This document shows positions 8,826 to 58,165 of a stretch of 64,000 nt of DNA, in pieces. Position numbers and translations under genes: made by a program. Source of the DNA: Lepidodermella squamata (Eukaryota; Animalia; Gastrotricha); the NCBI GenBank assembly GCA_047495785.1, contig JBLDXI010000001.1, positions 310,001 to 374,000 on the forward strand, given 5' to 3'. The notes below the pieces were generated by a model, which searched no databases, was not told where the DNA came from, and was given only the letters and a program-made list of their open reading frames with translations. Numbering within the stretch: position 1 is the first letter of the stretch; each line of letters opens with the position of its first letter.

Positions 8826-10342
8826 TCTAGAAAGTAGAAAGCAAGGCATACAGAATTGAAGGTGATAAAGTACAAAGTGTGTGTAATCTATTCAGAAGAC
8901 TGGCTTCTCGTCCAAGATGGCAAATTGCAGCCAATAGCCAATCATTAATCATATATTGCGTATGCGCGATCAAAAATATTAGCGTTTAATCCGCGCAGAA
9001 CAGTGGGTAAGTTTTCGCGATGGGCGGAAACAACACGTGAAGTGAGAAGGCAAATGCCTTATTCAAGCTCATTCTCCTCTGAAACTCAATTCTCTGCCGA
9101 GAATATCGTCGGCAAGGAAAGGGTTAAGCCTAAGCAGCATCAGCTATAAGCTTAGATCATCTGTATATGTGCAAAATCTAAACCATTCGCATCGATCGGT
9201 TCACGGCAATTGTGCATACCTACTTTGGATTCAACTCAAGATTGATTGTGAATTGTCAGCCCAGCGAGAGTTAATGGACTTACCAACGTGAATAGTGAGC
9301 TACCTCCTAACTCTAAGAGTCAACAAACGCATTCATCTTTCGCCTCTATGTTCTATGCTCCAATCAATTACTTATTGCTATCAGTAATAGGTCTTCTAAC
9401 TTTCGGCTGAGATGGCGAGCTTGCATTGGTCCATGGGGGTTGGCTAGCCTATAGGTATGTTATTTTCTCAGTTTGAGGACTGGTTTCTTAACAAAAGCAA
9501 GCACTTGTGAGTGAATCTTCCAGAAAATATGTCGGCCACTCTTCCAGAGTATCGAAGGCATCGAATGAGTAGGGATCATCTACCGCCAAAAGCTCATGAT
9601 CGCGTGCCTTGCGCGGAGCCGGCCCCGACATCGACCTTCGGCAAATGTGTAAAAACATGCTGCGATCATTGTCAATCAATATCATATGCTGTATTGCAAA
9701 ATATGATATAGTTTAATATTAATAATGAAATCATAAAAAAATTGAAATTTTGTAGGAAAAGGCTTTCTTCACGCCCAGCAGCGCGAGGACTGAGATGCCG
9801 CACATTTTCTCTCAGCTGCGGCTAGTTTGAAGCTGGAAGCTGGAACTAACTCTCAAAATGCCTCCTGGCTTGTTTCCACTGTCTGCTGCGATACCTTCGT
9901 TAAACCAATACAACGCGAATGTCCACTCTTTTCTCTAGAAAACAGTGTTTCTCAGCTGATTGGTATATCCATTCATTTCGATTGTTGATTTCGTACTTTA
10001 CACGCCACTGGTACACCATTCGGTTTTTGTTCCGCAAGGTGCCTAGTGGAAACTAATCTATTTGTTTTAATAATTATTAAATTGTGACCGTAGTCTTTAA
10101 GAAAAAAAATCAACTGATAAAACTAATACAAATAGTGTGTTTGTGTTCTATGAACCTATCATGTGGTTTATGAAGAAATAGAAAAAAAAATGTTGCAAAA
10201 ATTGAACATGCAGCCAGAAGATTCATCATCATTTTCGATTTATTCATTCAATCTCTAGCCAGCCTAGAATATGTTGAACTTCCAGCTTAAACTTCTTAAC
10301 TGTTCCGTAAATGTTGTTTATGAAACGTAACGCATTTATTCG

Positions 10343-37121: not shown

Positions 37122-40100
37122 TTAGCAGCGTCTTGGCACCGACGAGGACTTCTGGGAAGACTCTTCGTCACTGCTCGACGACGATGCTTCTGACGAAGCT
37201 GGCGGGGTGTCAGGGTGCGAAGAGTTTATTGCTTGTGAAGAACATGGCACATTGGGCTTGGCGAGGGAGGAAGGAGAAGTCGAAATTGAAGTCGAAAACG
37301 CAGGCGATGCGTCGGGCGAGCCTGGCAACGGCGCATCAGCAATCACTGGGTCATTTTCTTCTTCAGGTTCTACTTCATCCGCAGAATCGCCCGGTGGCGT
37401 CAACGGCGGCGTCGACGACGGCTGGTGACTGCTGCTCTCGAGCTCGTCTTCGCCATCTTGGCTAGACGAGTCGGAGTACGCATCGCTGTTGCGCCGAGGT
37501 GTTACTTCTTCTCCTTCCCCTTCGTTGTGGACTGTCGCGCTCACTGATGGAATGCTGTTGCTAGACGGGTCCGATTCCAGGGGCACTCGGCGCTGGCCGG
37601 CGGCTCGCTTTGCCGCGGCCGCTCGCCATTGTCGCCACGCCACGAGCACCAATACTGCAAGGCCTGTTGAAGATAGAGAAAATCAAATATAGACATGGTG
37701 AAATGGTGAAAAGTTAAGCGATCAACTTACCTAAGGTAACAATACCCATCCAGGCTATCACTCCGACAGAGACACTGGACAAGGCGGCAGGAGCGCTGGC
37801 TTCAGCGCCATCGGTTTTACCGGCCTTGTCAAGGCCGCGGTCGCCAACTTCGAGTTTGCCGAACCGCGAGTTATTGTTGGCCAAAGTTTGACCGAAGTCC
37901 ATCATTGCTTCTTCAGGGAAGACTGAGTTCTGTAAGATGCAGATGTAGCTGCCGTAGGTGTTGATGCATCGATAGCCGGCGGTGCACGGGAATGATTCGC
38001 ACTCATCGACATCTGTAGGGAGAAGAAAAAAACAAGGTAAAAACGTGAATAACAATATTGTGCAAAGCAAACGTACCGTCGCAGCTATGCATGTTGACGT
38101 TGAGCAAGAAGCCACGTCGGCAGATGCACTCGTAACCATCGGCGCGGCTAGGATTCTCGACGCACTGCTGCTCGCAGAGACCTTGGTAGCGAGCGCAACC
38201 TTGGATCTGTTCGCAAGAGTGCCTGTTCGGCAGCAGTTTGTAGCCGTCGCGGCAAGAGCACAAGTACGAGCCTTCGGTGTCGGTGCACTGGTGCTCGCAG
38301 CCGCCGTTGCGGTCGAGACATTCGTTGACGTTGACGCAGCGAGTGCCGTTCATCGGGCGGTGAATGCCAGGCGCAACTTCGCACGAGCACAAACGGCCAC
38401 GGAAGGTCAAATGGCACGTGACCTTCTCAGCTGGGCAGTCGAGACGACCATCGAGTTGATAACCGTCGCGGCACGTGCAGTAGTAGCCTGGGTAGGCGTT
38501 AAGACAGAGCTGATCGCAATAGCCGTTGTTGGTGCGGCATTCGTTGGTGTCGCTCATGACCTTGGTTAGATCGATGTTAGCAAGACCGCTGCCACCGGGG
38601 CCAGGTGGGCCAGGCGGGCCAGGAGGACCAGCAGGACCTTGTCTACCTGGGCTACCAACCGCGCCAGACTCTCCCTTAGGACCAGCAGGACCAGGGCTTC
38701 CGTTGTTGCCAGGGCGACCGGCAGGGCCTCGAGGGCCGCTGGGACCAGGCGAGCCAGTGTCACCCTTAGGACCAGGATTGCCGGTGGATCCACGGATGCC
38801 ACTTCCACCACGAGGGCCAGGCATGCCCGGTGGTCCAGGAGGACCAGCGATGCCAGGGAGACCTTGAGGACCAGGTCTGCCGTCTTGACCGGGGGATCCC
38901 GGCAAGCCGCGTTGACCTTGGTCACCCTTAACACCAGCGCTGTTGGTACCAGGTTCACCCTTTTCACCACGATCACCGCGATCACCCTTCGAGCCAGGGA
39001 GGCCAGGAATGCCAGCAGGGCCTTGACGGCCTGGAGCACCCATAGCACCGCTCTCACCCTTCTGTCCGCGAACACCAGGTGTGCCAGGTAGACCAGGTTC
39101 TCCTGCGCGACCAGGATCACCAGTAGGACCACGCGGGCCAGGGACAGCTGGAACATTGTTCACGTTTCCAGGTGGGCCAGGGGGACCGGCAGGACCGCGA
39201 AGACCGCGGGCGCCAGACTCACCCTTCTCACCACGAGGGCCAGGAATGCCGACGCCAGGGGCACCTTTAGCTCCACTGGGACCACGTTCACCAGGGCGAC
39301 CTGGTGTACCATTTTGTCCGTCAATACCACGCTCGCCCTTCGGTCCGGCAGGTCCTGGTTGACCATTTTCTCCGGGACGACCATCTCGTCCTTGCTGGCC
39401 AGGTTGGCCGGGTAGACCTTGAGAACCGCGAGGACCGGAAGGACCAGGGTTACCAGGTGATCCAGGTCTGCCAGCTGGGCCTTGAGGTCCACTGCGTCCG
39501 GGTAATCCGGCGATACCAGCAGGCCCAATAGGACCAGGAGGACCGGCTTGACCAGCTTCTCCGCGAGGACCAGGTTGACCAGGTTGGCCAGGTTGTCCGT
39601 CGTTACCAGGGCGACCAGGCGCACCAGGCAAGCCCATTCCAGTAGGACCGCGAGGGCCAGATGGACCAGGGGCACCAGTTCTACCTGACTGTCCAGGTTG
39701 GCCAGCAGGTCCCTGAGGACCGCGAGCTCCGGAGTCACCCTTAGGTCCAGGATTTCCGGCTTGGCCCTTTTGACCAGCAGGGCCAGGTTGACCTGGGAAT
39801 CCTTGCTCACCACGGGGACCAGGGGAACCAGATGGACCACGTGATCCGCTCGCTCCCTTGACACCAGGAAGACCAGCCTCACCCTTCAGACCAGGGATGC
39901 CAGCTTCTCCACGGTCACCCTTCGCGCCGAGAGGGCCAATGGGACCACGTTCGCCAGGCATACCAGGAGTTCCGGCTGGACCAGGCGCACCACGAGCACC
40001 TGATTGACCCTTCGGGCCAGCTTCACCAGGTCTACCTGGGGTACCAGGAACACCTTGATCTCCCTAAAATGGAAAACGGTAATGAACAAATTCAACAAAT

Positions 40101-43100
40101 GCTAAGTGAATCTTTACCTTGACAGAGTCTCCCTTCGGACCGCGTGGACCACTTGGTCCGGGCAATCCAGTACGGCCTGTAGCTCCCTGAAGACCTCTGG
40201 GTCCAGAAGGTCCAGGAACACCAGGAGCACCTGGAGAACCTCGGTCACCAGGGCGACCATCTTGGCCAGGAGCACCAGCAGGTCCACTATTGTAAACAAA
40301 GTTATATATTGAAGCATTCACGAGAAAGTGTTAACGTACCGAATGCCAGATTCACCACGACCTCCACGCTCACCCTTGCTGCCTTGAGGACCCGGTAAAC
40401 CAGGCTGGCCGATGTCACCCTTTTGGCCAGGAACACCAGCAGGGCCACGAGGTCCACTCTCACCATGGGCACCTTTGGGACCAGCTTGTCCGGTTTGGCC
40501 AGTTTGACCAGGTTGACCGCGAGATCCAGAGACACCTTTCTCTCCCTTCGATCCAGGGGCTCCAGGTTGGCCGGCTTGTCCGGTTGGACCTCTGGCTCCG
40601 CTAATGCCTTGTGGGCCGACGGGACCGGGCCTGCCGATTTGACCAGTTTGGCCAGGAGGACCTTGCGGACCGCTGGCACCTGGTCTTCCAGATGGACCAG
40701 GCTGACCAGTCGGACCAACGATAGATCTTCCGTCAGCACCAGGAGCACCGGGGATACCAGCCTCACCCTTTTGGCCTGGGACGCCTGGCATACCACGAGC
40801 ACCAGAGGCGCCAGGTCTGCCAGCTAAACCAGGTGTTCCAGAGGGACCCATTGGGCCGACTGGACCGCGTTCACCGGGTGAGCCAGTATCTCCTCGTCGT
40901 CCAGCCGCTCCGCTCTCTCCCTTAGAACCCTTCGGGCCGACAATACCAGGGACACCCTGAGGACCACGTGCGCCAGACGGTCCTGGCAAGCCAGTAGAAC
41001 CACGAGCGCCGGGTTGACCAGCGGCGCCTGGTTGGCCGTCTAAACCATTGCGACCAGGTTCTCCTTTCATGCCTTGCAGACCAACAGGGCCCTGAGGACC
41101 GCGCGGGCCTGATAAGCCTTGCGCTCCTGGAGCTCCCGTGCGACCAGGTTGACCGGTTTGGCCAGGCACGCCTTGAGGTCCGAGATCACCTTTCTCACCA
41201 CGTTGTCCGGGTTCGCCCTTACGTCCAGGCTCTCCAGTGAAACCGCGGGGGCCAGACAAGCCTGGGACACCACGCATGCCTGGTTCACCCTTGACACCAG
41301 GAGCACCGATGGGTCCAATAGGTCCGAGATCACCCTTTTGGCCTTGCTGACCAGGTAATCCAGGGCGGCCTTGAGGCCCAGAAACACCCATGGGTCCACG
41401 ATCTCCCTTAATACCTGGCTCACCACGTTGACCGGGGAGGCCAGGAATGCCTTGGGCGCCACTTGTTCCGCGATCACCCTTCTGACCAGGTTGTCCGATG
41501 GGGCCTTGAGGACCGAGAGGGCCACGCTCACCACGTTCTCCTTGATCACCCTTGTTGCCTTGGATACCAGGAGTACCAGGGAAACCACGAGGTCCAGAAG
41601 CACCAGGTTGACCAGTTCTACCAGTGATACCTTGTGGGCCTTGGGAGCCAGGTTGACCAGGAACTCCTTGAGGTCCGCGCTCACCAGCTGGGCCAGCAAC
41701 GCCAGGGAAGCCACGAGGACCAGACAAACCGGGGATACCGCGTTCTCCAGTGCGACCTGGCTGACCAGTTTGACCAGGTTGACCTGGATTGCCCTGGTCT
41801 CCCTTGAAACCTTGCGGGCCTTGTTGGCCTGGTTGGCCTGGAACGCCAGTAGGACCACGAGCACCAGATTGACCAGGGATACCACGATCACCCTGATTGC
41901 CCTTAGTTCCTTGAGGTCCTTGAGGTCCAATAGGTCCGAGAGGGCCTTGCGGGCCACGGGCTCCACTGTTGCCTTGCGAGCCTTTAGGACCTTGGATACC
42001 TTGATCGCCCTTAGCTCCGGGACGGCCCTCCGGTCCGATAGGTCCGATGGGGCCACGTTCTCCCTGAGGACCAACGCGACCAGTCTCTCCACGAGCACCG
42101 CTAGCGCCTTTGTCTCCCTTGGAACCAGGGGCACCACGCGCGCCAGAAGTTCCAGGAACACCTTGTTGACCTTTCAGGCCTGTCTGACCAGTGGGGCCAT
42201 CACGACCAGGGACGCCAGCCGGACCTCGAGATCCAGATGTACCCTTGTCGCCCTTTTCGCCAGGTCGGCCTTGTACGCCTTGAATGCCCTGAGTTCCGGG
42301 GGCTCCACGGGGACCAGAGATGCCTATAATAATATTCATGAAATGAGTATCTTCAGAAAATAATCAGCTAATAATCTTACCTGGAGCACCAGTTAGACCA
42401 CGGTCTCCGCGATCACCCTTCGGGCCCATCAAGCCAGGAGCACCAGGCTGACCAGTCAGACCGATCGGGCCTCGAGGACCGGATGGGCCTTGCTGACCAG
42501 TCCTGCCGGTGGGTCCAGCGGGGCCAGGAGTACCAATAGCACCCTTAGCACCAGATCGACCAGGTGCGCCGTCGTTACCGCGATCACCCTTAGCGCCGGG
42601 GACACCGGGCAAGCCGGTTACACCTTGAATGCCGATACCCGGCTGACCACGTTCACCACGAGGTCCGCTAGGGCCGATGGCGCCTCGGTCTCCCTTGATG
42701 CCAGGAACACCCTGTTCACCGTTTCGGCCAGGGACACCTTGATCTCCCTTTGGTCCGATTGGGCCGATTGGTCCGATAGGGCCAGCGATGCCAGGCTGGC
42801 CTCGTTCTCCTTTCGCACCAGATGTACCTTGCGAGCCCTTAGGTCCTTGAACACCAGGGGTACCAGGTCTGCCCGCAGCGCCAGAACGACCATCAGTACC
42901 GCGATCACCCTTCGGGCCTGGAAGACCAGTTTGGCCTCGAGGGCCAGATACACCAGGGACGCCTTGAGTACCTTTCTCGCCAGTTCTTCCTTGAGGACCT
43001 TGAGGACCACTTTGTCCGCGCAAACCAGGAGCACCAATAGGACCCGGCGCACCTGTGATGCCTTGAGGACCGATAGGTCCACGCTCACCATTTCTGCCAG

Positions 43101-46100
43101 GTTCACCAACGCGACCAGTGTCACCAACGTTGCCTTTTTGACCAGGCTGACCAATGGGACCTTGAGGACCGCGAGCTCCGGATACACCCTTCTCACCCGG
43201 AGTGCCGCGATCACCCTTCGCACCGCTGGTACCGCGGGGACCCATAGGACCAATAGGACCGATCGGGCCGAGAGCTCCTTTCTCACCAGGCACACCTGGG
43301 CGGCCTTGGGGACCTTGAGGTCCACTTCTGCCCTGAGGTCCGAGATCACCTTTAGGTCCAGCAACACCAGGGTTACCAGTGGGGCCACGAGGTCCGCTTT
43401 GGCCAGTTGGGCCGCGAACGCCAGGAGTACCAATAGGGCCGATTTCACCCCGGTCTCCCTTAATGCCTTGGATACCAGGAATACCTTGAATGCCTTGTGG
43501 ACCTTGAGGACCGCGAGCGCCCGAATTACCAGGAGAGCCCTTGGGACCGACATTTCCTTGGTCACCTTTAGCACCTTGTTGGCCAGGGATGCCAGGTTGA
43601 CCTTGTGGGCCACGAGCGCCAGACAAGCCAGGGAGACCAGTTTGACCACGTTGACCTGTTTGACCGAATTCACCCTTGTCACCTTTGGTACCAGGAACGC
43701 CCTGGGCTCCAGTGCGGCCGACAGCTCCTTTATCTCCCTTCGGACCGGCAACGCCAGGAATACCTTGAATACCAGGAGTGCCCTGGGGACCACGGGCGCC
43801 AGAAACACCCTGTGATCCGCGTTCACCCTTGTCACCAGGAACACCGCGAGGTCCAGCGGGGCCGGATCTGCCAGGAACACCAATAGGTCCGATGGGACCT
43901 CGCTCACCCTGAGGACCCTGAGGTCCGATTTGTCCGGTGAGACCTTGAGGGCCGGGAAGACCGCGATCGCCAGAATTGCCTTTCACACCACGAGCTCCAG
44001 ATTCGCCCTTTTGACCTCGTTCGCCAGGAATACCAGTGCGACCCTGGTCACCCTTAGCACCCGATGTACCTTGCGGACCTCGAATACCAGGAGCACCTGG
44101 TTGACCAGTGAGACCAATTGGACCGATGGGGCCGATGGGGCCACGTTCGCCAGGAACTCCCGGGACTCCGCGTTCACCCGGAACACCTTGAATACCCGGA
44201 ACACCTCGCGGACCAGATGGGCCTTGCAATCCAGTTCTACCAGGTTCTCCTTTCAAGCCTTGAATGCCGGGGACACCTTGAGGACCACGGGCGCCACTCT
44301 GACCAGGAACACCACGATCTCCTTGGGCTCCTCGATCACCCTTAGAGCCAGGAATACCAGGATTTCCAGTCAAGCCAGGTTGGCCAGGAACACCTTGAGG
44401 ACCTTGAGGTCCGATAGGGCCTCGCGAACCACTAGTTCCGGGAACACCTTGGTTGCCCTTAGCTCCAGGTACACCGATCGGGCCTTGAGGGCCAACCTCA
44501 CCACGGGGACCTTGAGGACCAACAGGCCCAAGAGGACCAATGGGACCCTGTGGGCCTCGCACACCAGAGTTTCCTTGATTTCCTTTGTCTCCCTTAGGAC
44601 CAGCAACACCAGGGGCACCAGTGCGACCGACTGCGCCAGATGTGCCTCGAGGACCGAGGTCTCCTTTGTCACCCTTGGCACCAACTGGACCTTGCTGACC
44701 AGGAACACCGCGGGCTCCGGAAAGACCAGGTGCACCAGTTCGGCCAGTTTGTCCAGGGACACCTTGCGGACCAACTGGTCCCAAGTCACCTTTGTTGCCT
44801 TTCTCTCCAGGTCGGCCTTGAGCTCCACTGGTTCCTTGTGGACCACGAACACCGGGCTCTCCCTTCGAGCCGACAGGTCCCTGAATGCCAGGAACGCCTC
44901 GAGCTCCAGATTGACCAGTTCTACCAGGAACACCGGTAGCTCCCAGATCGCCCTTGCTTCCTTTAGGTCCAGATCGGCCGGGGATGCCAGAATCACCCTG
45001 GTTGCCCTTGATTCCTTGGGGTCCTTGAGGTCCGACGGGGCCAAGAGGTCCGATGTCACCCTTCTGGCCGGTAGGTCCTCGAGCACCGCTAGCTCCGGGG
45101 ATACCAGATCTGCCAGTTGGACCGACAGCGCCAGATCTGCCAGGAACACCTTGGTCACCCTTGGGTCCTTGTCTACCAGTCTCGCCGATGTCACCCTTTT
45201 GACCTTGGTTGCCCTTGTCTCCGGGCAAACCTCGGGCACCAGTAATGCTTCGACCAGGTTGACCGGTTTCACCCTAAGTTCCGGCAAATCAATGTTTTGT
45301 TTCAATAATCATATTAATAATCTTACCTTGACACCTTGGTCACCCTTCTGACCAGTAGGACCAACAAGACCTGGGCGACCAGCTGCTCCAGATGTACCTG
45401 GAACGCCTCTATCACCTTTAGGACCAGCAACACCTTGATCACCCTTGTTGCCTTTAGCCCCGCTGACACCAGGTCGACCAGTCAAACCAGTCGGGCCGAA
45501 TTCGCCCTTTGGACCAACAGGTCCTTGCAAACCAGTTGGGCCCATTGGACCTGAAAGACAAGAATAAGGATTAAAACAAATAGCCGCAAAAAATAATTGT
45601 TAAGCGTACCTCGAGCGCCGGAGTTTCCTTGTTGTCCCTTGGGTCCAGCAATGCCAGGGGCACCAATTGGGCCGATTTCACCTTTCTGACCCTTGATGCC
45701 AGTTCCAGCGGCACCGCGAGCACCAGGTTGACCAGGAGCACCAGTCGGACCCATTGGTCCAATCGGACCACGGGATCCGGAGGTACCAGGCAGGCCAGTT
45801 AAACCAGTGAAACCTCGGTCACCCTTAGGGCCTTGAGCTCCAGACGTGCCTCTGGGACCAAGGTCACCCTTGTTGCCTTTCTCGCCAGGCGCTCCAATAG
45901 GACCAGGTTGACCAGTTCGGCCAGTTTGGCCTTCCGGACCGCGCTCACCAATCGGACCTTGGGGTCCACGAGGGCCAGAGTTGCCTTGCCTGCCAGGAAT
46001 GCCAGACACACCGGGGACACCTTGGTCTCCCTTGGTGCCTTGAATACCGCGCGGGCCACTGACACCTTGAGGGCCTCGCTCGCCAGGAACACCACGGTCG

Positions 46101-49100
46101 CCTTGGTTGCCCTTGATACCTTGCGGTCCAATATCACCACGATCGCCTTTAGGTCCGATGTCACCTTTAGCACCACGAGCACCAGAAACGCCGGGGAATC
46201 CACGGTCTCCTTGGTTTCCTTTAATACCCTGTAGACCAGGAACGCCAGTAACACCTTGGTCGCCCTTGATGCCTTGAATGCCATTGTCGCCTTTTTGGCC
46301 CTTAGCGCCAGACGCACCACGTTGTCCGGTCAGACCAGTGGGACCTCGAGCTCCAGATTGGCCAGTGATACCTGGTCGTCCGGTTTGACCAGGGACGCCA
46401 ACGTCACCCTTGAGACCACGAGCACCTGATGCGCCAACGTTGCCTTTTTGACCTTCAGGGCCACGGAGACCTGTCGGTCCCTGGTCACCCTTAGGACCGA
46501 CGATACCAGGCATACCCCGAGGGCCAGAAACACCCGGAAGTCCAGGCAAACCAGTAGGGCCGCGGGTACCATCAATACCAGGGACACCACGTTCACCAGG
46601 GACACCTGGGACACCTTGGTTTCCTTTGTCGCCCTTGATGCCAGTACCACTTCGACCAGTTGCACCGACAGGACCAACGGGACCACGTTCGCCTTGAGGA
46701 CCGCGCTCTCCTGGAACGCCACGAGCGCCAGAGGTACCAGGAACACCACGATCACCTTTCGTGCCTTGGATGCCAGGGACACCAGTAGGGCCTTGGACAC
46801 CTGGGACACCTCGTGCTCCAGATTGACCGGGCCTGCCGTCGTTTCCGCTGTTACCCTTGTCACCCTTGAAGCCTTGCGGACCCTGCGGACCAATTGGGCC
46901 GATCGGACCACGAGCTCCACTGTTACCTTGTGGGCCCTGGGGTCCACGGTCACCTTGATTGCCCTTAGGTCCAATGGCACCAGACCTACCAGGCATGCCA
47001 GGCATACCGGTTGGACCAACAGGACCGACTTGACCAGTTCGACCAAGGTCTCCCTTTTCGCCAGTGTCTCCCTTGTTACCCTTTTCACCTGGGCGGCCAA
47101 TAGGACCTTGGGCACCTGATGTTCCACGGTCACCCTTCAGACCTTGTGGGCCAATTGGGCCGATTGGACCGATCGGGCCTCGAGGACCAACTTCACCAAT
47201 AGGACCACGAGCACCCGAGGAGCCGACGTTGCCCTTGTCACCCTTAATACCAGGGGCGCCAGTGAGACCAGTTTGACCAAGAGAGCCTTTAGGTCCGCTA
47301 ACGCCACGTTCTCCCTTTTGGCCAGGGAGACCAGTAATACCGCGTGGGCCAGAAGTACCCTGAGGACCACGGATGCCTGGCTCTCCTTTTTCGCCAGTGA
47401 AACCGCGGTCACCCTTCTGTCCGATTACCGTTTGACCAGGAGTACCCGGAATACCGGCAGGACCAGGCAGACCAGCGTCACCCTTAGTACCCTTGGGGCC
47501 GATAGCTCCACTGCGTCCAGGAATACCTGGGACTCCAGCATCACCCTTGATACCTTGGGGGCCTCGTTCACCAGTAATACCGGGTTGGCCATTGATGCCA
47601 GGGCGACCAGTCGGACCAATAGGACCAGAAGTACCTCGAGGTCCAATGTCTCCCTTGTCTCCCTTCGAGCCACGAGCGCCAGAGTTGCCTGGAGCACCTT
47701 TCGGACCAGCGGCACCGTCGCGGCCATCTTTGCCGGGAACACCCTGAGCGCCAGTGGATCCGGGGCGGCCTGGCAGACCAGTTCGACCAGTGTCACCAGT
47801 GTTGCCTTTGTCGCCCTTGTTACCGAGGTCGCCTTTGGGTCCTTGCATGCCGCGGGGGCCGGAGACGCCAGGCGCGCCAGTTCTACCAGGTACACCTTGA
47901 ATACCAGGCTCACCAGTGCGACCAACCTCGCCCTTAACACCTCGGGGGCCAGAAACACCCTGAGGGCCGATATTGCCAGTAGGACCACGCGGGCCGAGTT
48001 CGCCTTGAGGACCACGTTCACCAGGAACGCCTCGAGCTCCGGAGTTACCTGGACGACCTGGGACACCTTGGTCTCCCTTGTCACCCTTCGAGCCGACCAA
48101 GCCTTGAGGACCAGGCTGACCAGTAAAGCCGCGCGGACCCGATGGACCAAGTGGGCCACGCTCGCCAGGAATACCGCGATCCCCTTTCTCTCCCCGAGCT
48201 CCAGAGCGGCCTGGTACACCGTCGCGTCCAGAGGCACCAAGATCACCTTTGTTGCCTTTGTCTCCATTTGCTCCCCGTGGGCCAGCAGCTCCAGATGGGC
48301 CTCGAGGACCAATAGGGCCCTGAATACCAGGGGTACCTTGAGGACCTCTCTCGCCGGGAACACCACGAGCTCCTGAGATACCAGGAACGCCTCGGTCACC
48401 CTTGGGGCCGATTGGGCCGAGTTCTCCAGGACGACCTGTGTTACCAACTTCACCCTTTTGGCCGCGAGCACCAGATTGACCAGTAGGACCTCGTGGTCCA
48501 AGGTCACCTTTGTCTCCCTTGATACCAGGTTGACCAGGTTGACCAGTGGCACCAGTGCGGCCAGACCGACCGGGCTGGCCAGTTTGACCTTCACGGCCTG
48601 TCTGTCCGGTTAAACCAGTGATACCTCGTGGTCCGGAAATACCAGGAACACCTCGTTCACCAACGTTACCCTTTTCACCAGGGCGTCCGACGGCACCAGT
48701 AGGACCAACACGGCCTGGAACTCCTTGATCTCCTTTGTCGCCCTTAGAACCGATCGATCCCTTGGCACCCGATTGGCCAGGCGCTCCACGAGGACCCTGG
48801 AGACCAGTCTCGCCGGGGCGACCGTTGATTCCAGGAACACCAGTTAGACCACGCTCGCCAGGGATACCTTGAGAGCCTTTCGGTCCGCTGACACCAGGTC
48901 GGCCAGTGAGACCAGGAACGCCTCGTTCTCCGATTGGGCCTTGCTCACCAGGACGGCCAGGAATACCGGTTGGGCCTTGGATACCTGGTTGGCCAGGAAC
49001 ACCGCGAGCACCAGAAATGCCAGGAACACCGCGATCACCTTGATTGCCTTTATCGCCCTTGGAGCCGGGTACACCAGGATTACCGATCGGACCAGTGTTA

Positions 49101-52100
49101 CCGCGACCTCCCTTGTCTCCTTTTTCACCGCGAGGTCCACCAATACCGGGTTGACCGGTGGGGCCTCGTGAGCCAGAAATGCCAGGTACACCACGATCAC
49201 CTTGGTTGCCCTTAATGCCGGGGACGCCTTGGTCGCCCTTGAGACCGCGAGGTCCTGAAATACCAGGAACACCTTGAGGACCTTGAGGACCACGCAGGCC
49301 AGTTTCACCAGGGCGGCCGACTTCTCCAGGTCGACCAGGTTGTCCAGTCATACCAGGAACACCAGGTACTCCAGTGAGACCAGTTGGGCCACGGGGTCCA
49401 GAAATGCCTTGACGACCTGGAACACCCTGTTCGCCTTGGTCACCCTTTGAGCCTCGGTCTCCCTTCAAGCCGACAGGACCGGTAAGACCAGGACGGCCAG
49501 GAATACCATTCGGGCCGGGCACGCCTTGGTCTCCCTTGGGACCAATGGGACCACGCTCGCCAATTGGACCTCGCTCGCCAGGCTGTCCAGTCAAGCCCGG
49601 TCTGCCTTGAGGACCAACGGCACCAGATGCTCCGCGATCACCCTTGTCACCTTTCACGGTCAGACCTGGGACACCACGCTCACCGGCATCACCCTTGGGG
49701 CCTCGAGCGCCTGAGTTACCAGTCGGACCACGTGGGCCAACAGGTCCTAGATCACCCTTCAGGCCTTGTGGGCCACGAGAGCCAGAGATACCCTGAATAC
49801 CAGGTTGGCCTTGCGATCCCTTGGGGCCAGCAGCTCCAGATCTGCCGGGTTGGCCAGTTGGGCCTTGAGCTCCATCACGACCAGGCTCTCCACGATCGCC
49901 CTTAATACCGATACCAGGAGCGCCTCGAGCGCCGGATGAACCAGGCTGGCCAGTTTGTCCACGGTCACCCTTCGGACCCACAATACCTTGAGGTCCTTGA
50001 TCACCTTTCGCACCAGGCACACCAGGACGGCCAATCGGACCTGACGGACCGGCACGTCCAGGAACTCCAGTAGGACCAATAGGACCTTGGGGACCGAAAT
50101 CTCCTTTATTGCCTTTCGGGCCAACAGCGCCAGAAGTACCAGGGCGGCCAGGAACACCTTGATCGCCCTTGGGACCGATAGGTCCTTGAGGGCCAACTTC
50201 TCCCGGTCTACCATTCAAACCAGGCACGCCTTGATCACCCTTGCCACCCTTGGCACCAGATGTTCCTTGAGGGCCACGTTGACCAGGCACACCTGAAGCA
50301 CCAGTGCGACCAGTTGGGCCACGAGGACCGACGTCACCAGGCCTGCCCGCAACACCAATGTCACCTTTATCACCCTTGACACCTCGTGCGCCGCTAATAC
50401 CAGGAGCTCCGTTGTTACCCTTGGGGCCGATTGGGCCAACTGGACCCAAGTCACCTTGTCTACCTTTCTCGCCAGGTCGACCTTGAGCACCAGTAGCACC
50501 CTTCTGTCCGAGGTCACCCTTTGCTCCTTTCGCTCCCGAAGTTCCCGGAGCGCCACGCTGTCCAGGAACGCCTTGTTCGCCAGGGCGACCGGGAACACCT
50601 TGGTCTCCTTTGTTTCCTTGATCTCCTTTCAGACCGATTGGGCCGATAGGGCCACGAGCTCCAGAAGCGCCAGGAACACCAGGCCTGCCCTCTCTACCAG
50701 TCTCACCAGTTGGGCCTTGACGACCCGGTTGGCCTGGTGTGCCGAGATCACCCTTAGGCCCAACGGGACCTCGGGCGCCAGAAGGACCTTGGATACCAGG
50801 GCTACCAGTTCTACCGGTCGCGCCTTGCGGGCCAGATCTGCCTGGAATACCGGTGATACCTTGCGGACCAGGAAGGCCAGGAACACCTCTGTCACCAGAT
50901 TGACCGGTGAGGCCAGGTACACCACGATCTCCCTTGGGGCCGGTAGCGCCGCGCTGGCCAGGATTGCCAGGAGTTCCGTCACGGCCAGAAGGGCCAGTCC
51001 TACCAGTTTGTCCTCGAGGTCCGACTTGTCCAGTCAGACCCTGTGGACCGATGGGACCAATTGGGCCAAGTGGTCCGCGCTCGCCAGGAATGCCTTGATC
51101 GCCCCTGTTTCCCTTAGGACCGAGTGCGCCTGAGGTGCCAGGGCGCCCAGGAACACCTTGTTCTCCAGGACGTCCAGGAATACCTTGGTCTCCCTTGTCA
51201 CCCTTTGATCCATCACGGCCAGGAACTCCCTGAATGCCTTGTTCTCCTTTCCTGCCAACAGCGCCGGATGTGCCAGGACGTCCAGTAGCGCCAGGGACAC
51301 CAGGAGTACCAGTAGGTCCACGAGCACCTGAAGTACCTGGAACACCAGGCTGTCCACGGTCACCAGGTCGACCAGCCAAGCCGGTTTCGCCGGGAACTCC
51401 TCGGTCACCTTTGGGACCAACTGGGCCGATTTGACCAGTAGCACCACGAGCACCAGAATTGCCAGGAATGCCAGTGGCACCAGGGCGGCCAGGAATACCC
51501 GAGACACCCTGAGGTCCTTGCGGACCAGTGCCGCCGCGCTGTCCACGATCACCCTTATCACCTTGATTTCCTTTCTCGCCAGGAACACCGCGAAGACCTT
51601 GAGGGCCCTGAGGACCACTTTGACCTCTTTGGCCAGGGACACCAGGTGCTCCGTTAATGCCAGGGACACCACGCTCACCAGTTGGGCCGCGAACGCCAGA
51701 ATTGCCTTGGTTTCCCTTGATGCCAGGAACACCTTGATCACCCTTCTGACCTGTCAGACCTTGAGGCCCGCGGGCGCCAGAGTTGCCAGGGTTTCCAGTG
51801 CGACCAGGAGCGCCAGTGTTGCCTTGATTACCTTTCGGACCAGATGCACCAGGTCGCCCAGTTGGGCCGAGGGGTCCTTGAATGCCAGGGACACCGCGCT
51901 CGCCTTGAGGACCAGGGGCACCGTCTCTACCGGGTACGCCAGCTCTGCCTGTTTCTCCAGTGAAGCCACGAGGACCGGATGCACCAATTCTGCCCGGTTC
52001 GCCAGGTCGACCAGGATTACCCAAGTCTCCCTTCTCACCAGGAATGCCAGGTCGGCCGATTTCACCTTGTGGGCCTCGTGGACCGACAGGGCCGATGGGG

Positions 52101-55100
52101 CCCATAGGACCAGTAATGCCGCGTCCAGGAATACCAGCTTGTCCAGTAAGACCGGTTGGGCCAGGTAAGCCTGGAACACCGCGTTCACCCTGAATGCCTT
52201 GCGGGCCGGGGCGACCCGTCGGTCCGATAGGACCAGATACACCAGGAATGCCACGGGGGCCTTGAATACCGGCATCTCCTTTCGAACCTGGAGCGCCATC
52301 TCGGCCGGGCTGGCCGGGGCGTCCAGCCTCTCCAGTCAGACCGCGAGAACCGCTGTTACCAGTGGGACCTTGGCGGCCAGGAACGCCGGCAACACCTTCA
52401 AGACAGGATAAATAAACTCAAGTCAAAATTTAAGAAATAATATTTTCTTACCTTGATCGCCCTTAGGACCTTGCGGACCAATGGCACCTCGGGGACCAGA
52501 GCGGCCAGGGACACCGGGGGCGCCAGTGTCTCCGACCTCACCCTTTCGACCAGGAATGCCGGATGCTCCGGTGCGGCCAGGCTTGCCTTCAGCACCAGGA
52601 GCTCCAGGACGGCCAGGTACACCAGCTGCTCCGGGGGTGCCGGGAATTCCACTCGCTCCTGTCTGTCCTTTTCGCCCTGGAATGCCAGCGAGGCCAGGCT
52701 CGCCTTGATCTCCCTTAGCACCATTCACGCCAGGAGTACCATCTTGGCCGGGGAATCCACGCTCGCCAGTCGGACCAGGCAAGCCTCGATCACCTTTCGG
52801 GCCGCCAACGCCTTGCGGACCCTGGGGACCGATAGGACCAGAGAATCCACGTTGGCCAGGTTGGCCAGGTTGGCCAGGTTGGCCGGGAACGCCGGCACTG
52901 CCTTTCGGACCAGTGCGACCTTGAATTCCTTGTGGACCCGGATTGCCTGTGAGACCTTGCACACCCGGCTGACCTGGGTTACCAGGACGGCCATCGTTTC
53001 CAGCATCACCTTTCTGTCCTTGAATTCCGGGGCGTCCCGGAATACCAGTTGGGCCAGGAGGACCTTGTGGGCCAACAATCGAATCACCAGGGCGACCTTG
53101 ATTACCCTGAGCACCAGTTTGACCTTGTCTACCAGGAACACCAGGATTGCCGGTTTGGCCTGGTGCGCCAATTGAACCAGGGCTTCCGCGGTCGCCTTTC
53201 GGACCGCCAGGACCAGTCATGCCTCGCGGACCAACAGCGCCTGGTAGGCCTCGGAGACCCGGAGAGCCCGGAGCGCCAGCTTGACCAGACGCACCAGTTC
53301 TTCCGTCACGTCCAGTGTTACCACGGTCACCTTTATCTCCGGGCAATCCGGGAAGGCCAGGGTTACCAGGAGCGCCGACGCGGCCAGGTTGTCCAGCCAT
53401 TCCAATATCTCCCTTTTGACCGGGTTGGCCAGGCATTCCAGCCGGGCCTGCAGGTCCAGTGCGACCAACCGCGCCTAAAACGAATCGTATTTTTACATAT
53501 ACCTATGAAGTTTTTAATCCAGCAACATACCTTGACGACCAGGTTGGCCGATTTCACCAGTTGGACCGGGGCGGCCTTGTTGTCCGGGTTCGCCGCGAGG
53601 GCCAGGGCCGCCTACAGCGCCCGTTTGACCTCGCAAGCCACGCGGGCCCTGAGCTCCTGGACTGCCAGGAGCGCCAGGGGCACCACCGTCACCTTTCTCG
53701 CCTCGAGCTCCAGTTCTACCCGGAAGACCGTTTGTGCCAGGAGTTCCGCGATCACCACGGTCACCCTTGCTGCCCGGAGTACCAGGAACGCCAGTTTGGC
53801 CTTGAAGACCGCGAGATCCTGATATTGAGGAAAACATATATTTAAGACTTTCTTAATAAAAATTATTGGGCCACAAACCTGTCGCGCCTGGAATGCCAGG
53901 AGAGCCAGTAGCGCCAGGGCGACCAGGTGTACCAGGGACACCAGCAACACCAGGCTCGCCAGTGCGGCCAGGAGTGCCAGGGAAGCCAGAGACACCAGGC
54001 AAGCCCCGAGAACCAGTTGATCCAGGAGGGCCGGCTGGGCCTCGTTCTCCACTAGGTCCGCGTTCGCCATTTCTACCAGGAACACCTGCAGCGCCAGGAA
54101 TTCCAGGATTGCCTCGATCGCCAGGAGGTCCGGCAGAGCCAGTTCGTCCGGCTGGACCAGGCGGTCCTGCCCTTCCGGGGGTTCCGGGCGAGCCAGGATT
54201 GCCAGGGACACCTGCTGTACCTGGCCTTCCGGCAGGGCCTGTGCTACCACGATCACCAGGGACACCAGGCCTGCCGGGCACGCCTGCTTGTCCTGTAGAG
54301 CCAGTCGATCCACGAACACCCGGAAAACCCGGGGATCCTGCATCACCCTTTGGTCCGCGGTCACCTAACAAGTAATGGCGTAAAAAATGCTAAAAAATGA
54401 CATGTGGGTAAACAAACCAGGCCGGCCAGGTTCTCCGTCGCGCCCAGGGGGACCGGGACGGCCAGTGGGACCTGGAAGACCAGTTGGACCGGTTGGGCCG
54501 GGTAGGCCACCTCGGCTGCCACCGGATCCAGGAGGGCCGGGTGGGCCAGGAGGGCCAGGAATCGCTGTTAACAAGAAACATAATTGCGAATTAGCCAAAA
54601 ATAATTAAAAATTGAATAAATCCCGTCACAATTTCACAGCGTAAACAAAGCACTTTAATTAGGGTATAAGTTAATCGTCATTATATGGATAAAATTCGGA
54701 CACGCAAAATTAATGGTCTATAAAATCCCAAGTAAAACGACTAATAACAATTATTAGTCGTAAATCCACAAGCAAAAAAATAAAAAATCGAGGTATCAGG
54801 GTAAACTGATTAATTCATCATAAGGCCAAAGCACCCGATACGGAGCAAATCTGTGATACCGAAGTAGTGATCAACATGATGGCGCGGCTTCGCAGACTGG
54901 CTACGCGTTGTAGCTGTTTGAATCTGACGCTTTTCACGTTTTTCCGCTGCTATGACCGAGCTATTAGCTTGGTCTATTTCTTCAAATTGGCAATTCAAAT
55001 TCGAAACAAATTAATAAACGATAAAAATTGCGTAACAAAAGTATTCCTACTACAACGAAACATGGAAATCCTGGGTGAGTAAACGTACCGGTATCAATAG

Positions 55101-55906
55101 CGACACCGACTGAATGCCGATAATTAGGCTTGAATTCTGCGAATTGAAGTGTCTTGCCAACTTCCGGTAGCGAGTCAGTTTCAAAGAAGGTATGAATGTA
55201 TTCCGGGTAGTCACGCGCTACTTCGTGACTGATCGGGTCAATGCCTTCTTCGTAAGTCCAACCAAAGTAAGAGACTGCGTAAATAAGAGGCCGGTCTGGT
55301 ACATCAAACTATAATTGGCGAAGAAATCAAGTAGAAAAGTCGTCACTTTTTTAACCTGGAAAAAACTTACAATGTACTGACCGCCTTGCCTAGGTAAGAC
55401 AACCGGGTACTCGTAAACGAGTTGCAATGTGGAGGAAGACGACACATTTGCTACCGGCCGCCATATTTGAAAACGCACTCTCGTTGGTCGAGGGCTGTCT
55501 GGATGGACGTAACACAGGAATTTGGCAAGAATACCCGTCACAAGCGGGAACTCGCGATTCAACCAAGTACGCCGTTGTGTGTCGGGATTTGTGTAACGTC
55601 GCTGTTTAATTTCAGCTCGTGCAGGGTAAAAAATTAAAGAGCCGACTGTCTCATCTAAATTAACGAAAAAAGTAATCAATTAGCTGGAATAATTCGAATT
55701 TTCTCCAGCTTACTAAAAAATCTCGGGGAAGTGGTCGAGGAATCTTCTTGAGCTGTTGTTCCTGCGACGAGGAACAGTATCGATGCGATTCCAGCGAAAA
55801 GTATTATTCCGAAATTAGGCCGCAGCGAAAAGGCCGATACAAATGACGCTCCAGGTAATGACGGCGCCTTTGTAGGCAGCAGGTGTCGCTGACGGCGGCT
55901 GCTCAT
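37122..55906 (-). CDS. Giant type I transmembrane collagen (~5,800 aa): signal peptide, novel N-terminal domain, ~5,100 aa Gly-X-Y, ~5 EGF/cbEGF modules, TM helix, acidic Ser-rich tail
   Basis: About 15 coding exons joined by GT-AG introns that continue the Gly-X-Y reading: ~55906-55712, 55655-55370, 55309-55089, 54564-54419, 54364-53879, 53821-53531, 53475-52452, 52395-45610, 45551-45327, 45274-42380, 42324-40339, 40288-40117, 40063-38076, 38012-37731, 37663-37122. EGF motifs include [28 protein letters not shown] and [10 protein letters not shown]. The TM helix [28 protein letters not shown] is split by intron 37664-37730. Confidence 0.9.
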
Positions 55907-58134
55907 CCTTCCTGGGCGTGAAGCGGATGAGCAAGGCTGCCTCAGTAATTCTTCCGTTCTTAACTGATCAGTGTTCTATAATCGAAAATAAAAAAATCAG
56001 AAATCAATACGTCAGCACGGATTTAAAACCTAGGCTATTTCGATAGATCATAGGTAAAGAAAAAAAGATGTTACAGGTAAACAACTCGTTTCCTACAAGT
56101 GTCAATAGACCGGTGTTTATAAGCATCCGTCATTGACAGTATAATGAAGCGATTCAAGAGCCCACTTAATAGCTTTAGTTGTTCTAAACGCCGGCGCCGA
56201 GAGCGAAAAAAATCGGTAGCGCAAATCTTTGAGCGCGCATCGCCGGCACACGCTCAGAAGCTCAATAGAGATATATCGCTGTCATCGCCTGGTCACCGTG
56301 TAAAAGAGCGTCGAGGACAAAAATAAACACAAATAAAAACAAAAACAAAAACAAGCGCGCGTATGAAGCGGCGATGATACCAGCGCGTCAACATGTATAG
56401 CGCGCACTATTCGAAGCGCATCATTGGTATCACTATTCGCGTTCTAAAAAAAAGAACGGTGCGGCGCCGTTGATTTCAATAGACAGTGCAGCACCTGAAT
56501 GTAGCGCTGGGTCTACAGTCGGAGATTCCGCGTCGGAATTGAGGACTGGGATTAATGCGGCTTAATTTAGGGCGGGGCAACTGGCTATTATTTTTTGCGC
56601 TTTAATTATTGCATTCGTGGCTGATGATGAATGTCAGTCACATTTTCTGCCGAGTTTCACCGCGATGAAGTGGAGGCGATGTCAACGCGCTAGAAGCTCA
56701 GGCGCAATCGAGCATAATATTTTACGGTCTAAAAATGTCGCCATGGCCCTGTTGTTGTTGTAGCTACTTCTTATTGTTGTTGTCGTTCGCAAGTCGGGCT
56801 TCTTTAATAAACGCGCGTGAATGTGCGCATGAGGTATATAGGCGGCGATGAGAGGATGACGCCAGCAGCAGTGGCAGCCAAAGGAGCAGCCCTGTGCTCT
56901 CCTCTTCGCATTCCACATTCCAATATTAGCAATTAGAATAACAACTATAAACCGAAGCAACACGGCGCCGACGCTACCTTTTCGCAGCGCGGCGATGGGC
57001 GACATAAATCAGCAGCCTGAAACACGTTTTTCGCAGGCCATTAGATATTTTCAGGCCTATGAAGGCGAAATTAATGACAGCATTTATGACGAGAGCTTTC
57101 GCTATTGTCAAAATAATCCTCGTCGCAATTATTTGCGCCAGGTACGTAAGCGCTGTTCACTAAAACTTCTAAAAATAATAACATGATGAAGAAAACAAGC
57201 GCAAAATTTACTGCGTTAATAAAAGCACCACCGATTACAGGGTGGCATATGAAAGCGCCTATAGCAAAGCGTAAGTAAAAGATAGTACCTATTTCACTCC
57301 AGCACTGAAGCTTTTTAGTATAAAAATAAATCTTCAATTAGACTATATGGTTCAAGTTATGGCTCATACACTATGCTATGCGTTAGTCAGGGTTATCCTT
57401 ATTAATAAGGGGCGGAGGATTGGGCACTAAAATTAGGAGTCGGGGTAAATGATACGATTCCGCTTCCGCTTGTTGCCTTGTTGACTAAGAACATGCCACC
57501 TATATTGGTATACAAAACAGTGTTTTGTTTGAACGTGTACAGATAATAATAATTAAAATAATAGGTAGGTCATATTAGTGTGGAGCTGCGTAAGTTGAAC
57601 TCGGATGGTTGGATAATTGTGGGGTGATTTCTTGCCACGGCCGAGCCGAGTGAGCGGCTTCTTGCCGGTGACGATGATGACGGTGAGTAGAAGTCTTCAC
57701 ATGACGAATGATAACAACAGCTTAATCGCGAAATATGAATAATAATAGTAAAAATGAAACTGTATATAATACGCGTAATATAGTAATAAAGGTAAACTGT
57801 ATCAAAATTACGGCGGTAAGGCACTAATAAATAAGTTATTAAATGGGTTATAGAAGGCAGGTAGGGGCCGATGATGGCGATGATTATGGTGATGTAAAAG
57901 GTAAATAATAAGAAAAAGTTGCAAGGTGAAATTTCAGGCACTCGAGGCAGCGCGCGCTGTGGGCATCGCACATGCCGCAGCGTACTTGAAATGGCAGCAC
58001 AACGGGGGCAATAAAACGCAGAGCGTGGCAGTGGAGGAAAGTTCAGTTGTCAACGCGAGATGAAGCGATGACAATTGAAGTATAAATAGTAGAAGGGGTT
58101 TCAAAATTTCAACTACAGTACTACTAAATATTGT

Positions 58135-58165
58135 TATTATTATTATTATTATTATTCATTATTGT
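58135..58165. repeat. (ATT)n microsatellite
   Basis: ttattattattattattattcattatt. Confidence 0.8.

Follow-up and report, generated by a model that had tools for sequence, protein, structure and literature searches.

Three exons at the 5′ end of a giant collagen gene of the gastrotrich Lepidodermella squamata probably encode a secretion signal and an extracellular head that resembles lectins and carbohydrate-binding modules (CBMs), carried by a type I membrane-anchored collagen and likely to act as a multivalent binding module. The gene lies on the minus strand of contig JBLDXI010000001.1 (NCBI GenBank assembly GCA_047495785.1), in the stretch from 310,001 to 374,000. This stretch of 64,000 nucleotides is called the window here, and all coordinates are counted from its first letter unless another sequence is named. 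A first-pass annotation had proposed that the collagen begins with a signal peptide and an unrecognised, beta-rich globular domain. We describe the gene model, the selection on the domain, its predicted fold and its relatives, and weigh the roles that the head might play.

Translation of the three exons recovered all the peptides quoted in that annotation, in the same frames and at the same coordinates (Table 1). The product comprises 232 residues and a split Gly codon: 52 residues of leader, 13 of Ser/Thr linker and 167 of domain. Introns in the surrounding region are short, and the codon split between exons 1 and 2 gives the N of an N-E-T sequon. The leader appears to be a cleavable signal peptide, with a predicted cut after residue 52 (TTA/QED). 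Small residues at −3 and −1, ahead of Q, are kept in the leaders of the window copy, of its ortholog and of its paralog, and the hydrophobic stretch aligns with the short classic signal peptide of the paralog. This agrees with the signal peptide of the original proposal.

The ortholog lies on a 17.9-kb metagenome contig (L009) that was reached by a library search. Its domain is encoded in one exon, which lacks intron 2, and its leader ends SNA/QDSSTTSP. The paralog, the only one found by a whole-genome search, lies 2 Mb from the window gene at G000:C1:2326411-2327115 (L006:412-1116, minus strand). It is a complete, stand-alone secreted protein of 215 residues that stops 14 residues past AIDT and has a single Cys in its short tail; its flanks, checked over about 19 kb on the downstream and 9 kb on the upstream side, hold no Gly-X-Y run. 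A profile search of the whole genome likewise found only two head loci, the window gene and this paralog. With the codon pairs of exons 2 and 3 pooled, the window head and the ortholog differ at proportions of 0.09 for nonsynonymous (pN) and 0.75 for synonymous (pS) changes, and 145 of the 167 residues (87%) are identical. Against the paralog, pN is 0.18 and pS 0.92 (saturated), with 66% identity in exon 2 and 77% in exon 3. By these codon comparisons the head domain is under strong purifying selection, far beyond chance. The globular N-terminal domain, put at about 170 residues before, is therefore upheld, with a length of 167.

The collagen itself points to an upstream partner. Its first Gly-X-Y exon has no in-frame ATG, and upstream the frame runs into a stop at 54607-54605; the exon thus needs an upstream coding exon. 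The split Gly codon that closes exon 3 fits this exon (55089 joined to 54564) across an intron of 524 nt. The ortholog has the same phase-1 G/GT donor after AIDT, and its Gly-X-Y exon starts about 370 nt further on, at L009:10131, with at least 844 further Gly-X-Y triplets downstream of the head. At the nucleotide level the window and L009 agree almost perfectly as far as the exon 3 donor GT, after which identity collapses. Further along, the uninterrupted Gly-X-Y blocks count 245, 27, 247 and 87 triplets in the window (45600-52120) and 245, 27, 246 and 87 in the ortholog (L009, 12397-17859). From these near-identical lengths it follows that the positions of the helix interruptions are conserved between the two species.

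At the other end of the chain, Pfam searches with the C-terminal exons identify an EGF array (EGF_3, FXa_inhibition/cEGF and EGF_CA). As read from the sequence, a membrane helix split by an intron is followed by a basic stretch (RQWR...KR) and an acidic, Ser-rich tail, and a (GPP)3-type clamp sits at the C-terminus of the collagen, beside the EGF array and the helix. A cleaved signal peptide together with this C-terminal EGF array and membrane helix implies a type I topology with the head at the distal tip, which is where the first-pass annotation had placed it, should the topology be of this type.

In databases of sequence families the head is invisible. The searches were run exon by exon, or with the naturally intron-less reading frame of the ortholog (L009:9262-9762). 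The domain had been called unrecognised, a claim exposed to any confident Pfam match; with hmmscan at E ≤ 10, neither the individual window exons nor the complete ortholog domain of 167 residues matched a Pfam family. The domains known to accompany collagens (TSPN/LamG, VWC, VWA, C1q, COLFI and collagen IV NC1) likewise gave no Pfam match to the head. Searches of PDB sequences with the exons returned only noise, e.g., antibody heavy chains at E 0.07, and a profile search of PDB sequences only a chance match to an acetylcholine receptor (E 0.74). Word-based protein searches gave no match for the first exon of the paralog; with full-length alignments of the family, they were swamped by collagen words or returned already-known members only.

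The fold, by contrast with the sequence, is familiar. Structures were predicted with AlphaFold2 for the ortholog domain (from an alignment of 36 rows) and for a distant member of the family (P0045, about 25-28% identical). The ortholog model has a predicted local distance difference test score (pLDDT) of 87.8 and a predicted template-modelling score of 0.85; the pLDDT of the P0045 model is 89.6. Both models show 13 strands and no helix, in keeping with the beta-rich look noted earlier. The single Cys of the head is predicted to lie within a strand. Both models were compared with 48,161 chains by VIA-align and yielded the same top set, with matches spanning 141-161 residues. With Z given for the ortholog model and then for the P0045 model, these are the cyanophage A4 capsid protein (11.9 and 10.8), the Cwp84 lectin-like domain (PDB 4ci7; 11.4 and 10.1), the Bxb1 tail tip (10.2 and 10.9), and the CBM-like domains of PVA esterase (9.5 and 9.3) and of acetylxylan esterase (8.6 and 9.0). 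PHR, F-type lectins, CBM32/6/35, discoidin, SUN and muskelin form the next tier (Z 6-8 over 100-130 residues). No LamG/TSPN or C1q structure is among the 50 best matches of either model. In the ESM Atlas, full-domain features scored 0.96 with unnamed Bacteroidota clusters and 0.92 with PF18560 Lectin_like clusters; the half-domain of the paralog gave scores below 0.9. On these models the head is a jelly-roll of the galactose-binding-domain-like class, a new sequence family within a familiar fold class. The absence of a sequence family, as claimed earlier, holds; the fold is not new, and the domain is not private to this gene.

That the domain is not private became clear from a HMMER search of the whole library with a two-sequence profile of exon 2 (E ≤ 1e-3). 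It gave 38 matches, 3 of them low-complexity false positives, which leaves about 35 relatives. The motifs common to them are GN.V..R, W.D, PL..G.L..F..Y.H, R(L/F)QIWRP, LV(Y/W)E, (I/F)GWT.E, PIS and S(I/V)A(V/L). Relatives with species names, all annotated "uncharacterized", come from Lingula anatina (LOC106154972, P0030), Tubulanus polymorphus (two), Owenia fusiformis (one) and Paralvinella palmiformis (one). In all the architectures compared, an extended stalk lies C-terminal to the head; it is collagen (P0014, P0036, P0023) or a Ser/Thr-rich, mucin-like stretch bearing one head (P0005, P0030).

The resemblance can extend over the whole chain. P0036 packs a small version of the window gene into 461 residues: a signal peptide and a head lead into about 19 triplets, after which come three Clr-type EGFs, a membrane helix and a tail. 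It is about 30% identical to the head over 154 residues (E 3e-18, measured on the ortholog reading frame) and 32% identical to the GPP/EGF part of the window gene. The layout of one or more heads, collagen, cEGF/FXa_inhibition/EGF_CA, membrane helix and tail is common to P0036, P0007 and P0013, and hhalign relates the head to P0013 with 95.8% probability. In the Tubulanus proteins, 4-5 heads in tandem precede this same cassette of collagen, EGFs, helix and tail. P0023 combines two heads with VWA-collagen-VWA, and the Owenia protein has PAN domains in addition to the head. In P0014 and P0036, signal peptide, domain and collagen are found on single contigs. A third gene with a head (L013:10001-11063), which belongs to a related organism in the same metagenome samples, has a signal peptide, a head and only about 21 Gly-X-Y triplets; in it, the domain end (FGIAIDT) and the Gly-X-Y run share one uninterrupted genomic reading frame. 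A profile search of the whole L. squamata genome found no counterpart of that gene. A neighboring frame of 344 residues (L013:13544-14578, with LAVFRP and GDVLGVFY) was considered as a further relative and rejected, as hhalign gave it a probability of 0.1% and Pfam no match. Taken together, the head represents an undescribed sequence family of gastrotrich-like animals and several spiralian phyla.

How might such a head work? The cleaved leader would send the chain out of the cell, so that the head becomes the extracellular N-terminus. Three chains would then wind into a triple helix, with the C-terminal EGF array and the membrane helix as its anchor. With three chains in one anchored triple helix, three heads would be held together about 1.5 μm from the cell surface. 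Displayed three-fold at the distal tip, they would most likely bind a polymeric ligand in the cuticle or matrix, such as a glycan. We infer both the trimeric display and the binding function, and prefer a binding role on four grounds: the fold class is dominated by glycan- and polymer-binding modules, the domain forms tandem arrays (in Tubulanus), a free secreted paralog exists in the same genome, and the head-on-stalk arrangement is constant among the relatives. Adhesion, cross-linking and chain registration had been put forward as roles for the head. Adhesion, or binding more generally, would fit the fold, the tandem arrays, the secreted paralog and the position atop a stalk best. For cross-linking and chain registration we find no support. 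The head has only one Cys, which is buried, and the junction lacks a Cys knot.

Several points weigh against the reading of the head as a secreted binding module at the tip of this collagen. Foldseek found no match in the PDB at E ≤ 0.001, the best being the Cwp84 lectin-like domain at E 1.3e-3. The hidden Markov model of PF18560 (27-bit cut-off) did not match the head and had no matches genome-wide at E ≤ 10. Z values of 10-12 at about 9% identity indicate a common fold and are neither a demonstration of homology nor proof of function. Most of the conserved residues are in strands and point to the core, so that no binding pocket could be drawn from conservation. We infer the junction of exon 3 with the Gly-X-Y exon in this species from comparative evidence. 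The n-region of the leader is unusually long (32 residues) and, with a hydrophobic core of 20 residues, is compatible with a signal-anchor. Finally, a dibasic site in a candidate linker exon could possibly release the head. One loop residue of the family, R18 of the domain, is an invariant Arg.

The last of these points carries the main competing explanation, that the head is a cleavable N-propeptide cut by a furin/kexin-type convertase at the linker motif KREKR. A head so removed would regulate how the rod is secreted or assembled, or perhaps act as a released factor, as might the stand-alone paralog. Many collagen N-propeptides undergo convertase processing. Such processing is reported for membrane collagens as well (PMC4678570). 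The candidate exon lies in the 524-nt intron. It is open, has AG/GT borders and keeps phase 1 on both sides; with an alternative acceptor at 54975/54974 it would be the stretch 54973-54860. It would encode a linker of about 40 residues with an N-S-S sequon as well as the dibasic motif, and it is a GC island (0.48 vs. 0.32 in the flanking intron). L009 has a counterpart at 9906-9968 in the same phase (GC 0.51 vs. 0.26-0.30), with the basic motifs RHWR and HRR and a PRH motif common to both. The paralog also counts on this side, since it is a separate gene that encodes a free form of the domain. However, alignment of the large introns of the window and L009 revealed no clear conserved block, so the exon stays a candidate, unproven and poorly conserved. 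In addition, the distant relatives P0036, P0014 and L013 join the domain to Gly-X-Y by 3-6 residues with no basic site, and the tandem arrays of Tubulanus are unlike a propeptide. On balance we consider a cleavable propeptide unlikely, though a competitor to be taken seriously.

A second explanation is that the head serves oligomerisation or chain registration, so that the three chains would be nucleated or brought into line from their N-terminal ends. Some jelly-roll domains do trimerise, such as those of C1q/TNF and of phage cement proteins, and a trimeric phage cement protein is among the structural matches (Z 6.0). A GPP clamp also follows directly after the domain. Yet the clamp, EGF array and membrane helix at the other end suggest folding from C to N; the closest solved structures belong to monomeric binding modules; copies of the domain are also found in tandem arrays and on mucin stalks, which do not trimerise; and the junction has no Cys knot. 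We regard registration as improbable, more so than propeptide removal.

It is harder still to credit that exons 1-3 are an independent gene for a small secreted protein that happens to lie upstream of the collagen gene. The paralog is complete soon after AIDT, and a transcript that reads through the exon 3 donor would meet a stop after only 35 more codons. But window copy and ortholog have unrelated read-through tails next to a domain that is 87% identical. Moreover, the first exon of the collagen has no start codon, the adjacency of head and collagen and the phase of their junction are conserved in L009, and the relatives are fused in single reading frames. An uncleaved signal-anchor, which would leave both chain ends in the membrane and the collagen as a giant extracellular loop, draws on the basic 32-residue n-region and the hydrophobic stretch of about 20 residues; it too has very little chance of being correct, as this stretch aligns with the ordinary short signal peptide of the paralog, small residues at −3 and −1 before a conserved Q-(E/D) and SSTTSP are kept in all three copies, and an internal Met of the ortholog would yield a classic signal peptide.

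Table 1. Features of the head-collagen gene in the window
Feature	Coordinates	Strand	Details
Exon 1	55906-55714	-	193 nt; ATG 55906-55904; donor A/GTAAGC
Leader	55751..55906	-	start codon, basic n-region of 32 residues, hydrophobic core of 20 residues
Ser/Thr-rich linker	55714..55750	-	end of exon 1; SSTTSP identical in window copy, paralog and ortholog
Intron 1	between exons 1 and 2	-	59 nt
Exon 2	55654-55371	-	284 nt; ends in phase 0; N-terminal 94 residues of the head domain
Exon 2 motifs	55371-55654	-	GN.V..R, PL..G.L..F..Y.H, R(F/L)QIWRP
Intron 2	55309-55370	-	62 nt, phase 0; same position in paralog; absent in ortholog L009
Exon 3	55308-55089	-	220 nt; ends in phase 1, single G then GTACGT
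Exon 3 content	55089-55308	-	C-terminal 73 domain residues (FGWTYE, PIS, ...SVGVAIDT) and first base of the split Gly/Ala codon
Candidate micro-exon or alternative exon	54860..54979	-	open frame, AG/GT borders, phase 1 kept on both sides
First Gly-X-Y exon	54418..54564	-	starts at 54564 after TTAACAG; begins with (A)
Rest of collagen rod	38585..54417	-	whole gene about 1710 Gly-X-Y triplets
C-terminal part	37122..38584	-	EGF array, membrane helix, basic stop-transfer stretch, acidic/Ser-rich tail

A few observations concern the region 5′ of the gene. An acceptor-like TTTTCGATTATAG lies 70 nt 5′ of the start codon (window 55907-55980, minus strand), and the ATG at 55906 is the earliest past an acceptor-like TATAG (55976-55980). 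The site could be the acceptor of an intron in the 5′ untranslated region or a trans-splice site. A short block, TTGCTCATCC, upstream of the window ATG is conserved with the 5′ region of the ortholog (L009:8950-9038), which has its own CGATATAG. The 2.5 kb 5′ of the gene appear to be non-coding and hold an (AAT)n microsatellite (58130-58165, minus strand).

To our knowledge, the collagenous receptors described so far carry their heads at the C-terminus. As for the membrane collagens, those described (PMC4678570) are type II and without a globular head of this kind. The present head belongs to a distinct family that databases do not see, and it would cap a type I anchored collagen at its N-terminal end. 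The cassette of head, collagen, EGF array and anchor recurs over several invertebrate phyla with stalks of very different lengths. Matrix biologists would gain a new domain family for Pfam, a candidate lectin, and a natural series that relates stalk length to function. A bolder proposal, which we advance tentatively and hold less likely than not to be right in full, is that these proteins form an old class of type I "collagen-stalk receptors" in gastrotrichs and spiralians (nemertean, annelid and brachiopod). In this class head, EGF array and anchor would have been kept while the spacer varied about 90-fold, from about 19 triplets in P0036 to about 1710. The stalk would be a molecular ruler and the head a new lectin family tying the cell surface to glycans of the cuticle or matrix. 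If so, stalk length would set the distance from head to membrane, up to 1.5 μm, over which such glycans are tethered.

Among known systems, the closest in structure is the lectin-like domain of Cwp84 from Clostridioides difficile (PDB 4ci7, PF18560), which has the same beta-sandwich jelly-roll topology over almost the whole domain. It superposes on the ortholog model with a root-mean-square deviation of 3.0 Å over 141 residues and on the P0045 model with 2.9 Å over 142. The Cwp84 domain differs in being bacterial and attached to a protease rather than a collagen, and at about 8-11% identity the likeness is one of fold only. More broadly, CBM32, CBM6 and CBM35, the F-type lectins, discoidin (F5/8 type C), PHR, phage tail-tip and capsid-decoration domains, and the CBM-like domains of esterases are of the same fold class and size as the head. 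Many of these galactose-binding-domain-like modules serve as heads that bind a glycan or polymer, placed at the far end of a larger assembly. They have no sequence relationship to the present head, however, nor could any of the residues that mark their binding sites be located in it; the motifs GN.V..R, R(L/F)QIWRP, LV(Y/W)E, (I/F)GWT.E and PIS are the family's own.

Other collagens offer likenesses of architecture. The TSPN/LamG domains of fibrillar and FACIT collagens are likewise N-terminal, non-collagenous beta-sandwiches, but the head has no Pfam match to them, nor are they found among the 50 best structural matches per model. The membrane collagens XIII/XXIII/XXV (MACITs) and XVII share with the window gene a membrane anchor and a large collagenous ectodomain. 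According to PMC4678570, they are type II proteins subject to convertase-type shedding, and the MACITs begin with a cytosolic domain at the N-terminus and lack a globular head of this kind at the distal end. The window gene, with its N-terminal signal peptide and head and its C-terminal membrane helix, is neither a type II MACIT nor a collagen XVII.

A further parallel is provided by the "EGF-domain collagens" associated with the shell of Lingula, in which EGF, EGF_CA and FXa_inhibition domains accompany a collagen triple helix and which were called a new group (Luo et al., 2015, PMC4595640). These authors ascribe the combination to domain shuffling in the Lingula lineage and mention neither an N-terminal head nor a membrane anchor (Luo et al., 2015). 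The same Pfam combination is found in the window gene, P0036, P0007 and P0013. This comparison of the window gene with three relatives suggests that the EGF-collagen combination, with membrane anchor and head, may be wider and older than the Lingula lineage, and that the Lingula proteins may be part of that larger group (cf. PMC4595640). The only Lingula relative of the head that was found (P0030, LOC106154972) is on a mucin-like stalk, not on collagen.

In design, the gene can be compared with the collagenous receptors and defence collagens. The class A scavenger receptors SR-A/MARCO, the collectin CL-P1, the collectins, the ficolins and C1q all hold three binding heads clear of the membrane or core on a stalk of trimeric collagen. 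Their heads are C-terminal and of the SRCR, C-type lectin, fibrinogen-like or C1q fold, and the membrane forms are type II. The principle of a stalk that presents heads is the same in the window gene, but here the head is N-terminal, the type I helix is C-terminal and follows an EGF array, and the stalk runs to about 1710 triplets. Its design would thus resemble that of a collectin or a scavenger receptor with the polarity of the chain reversed.

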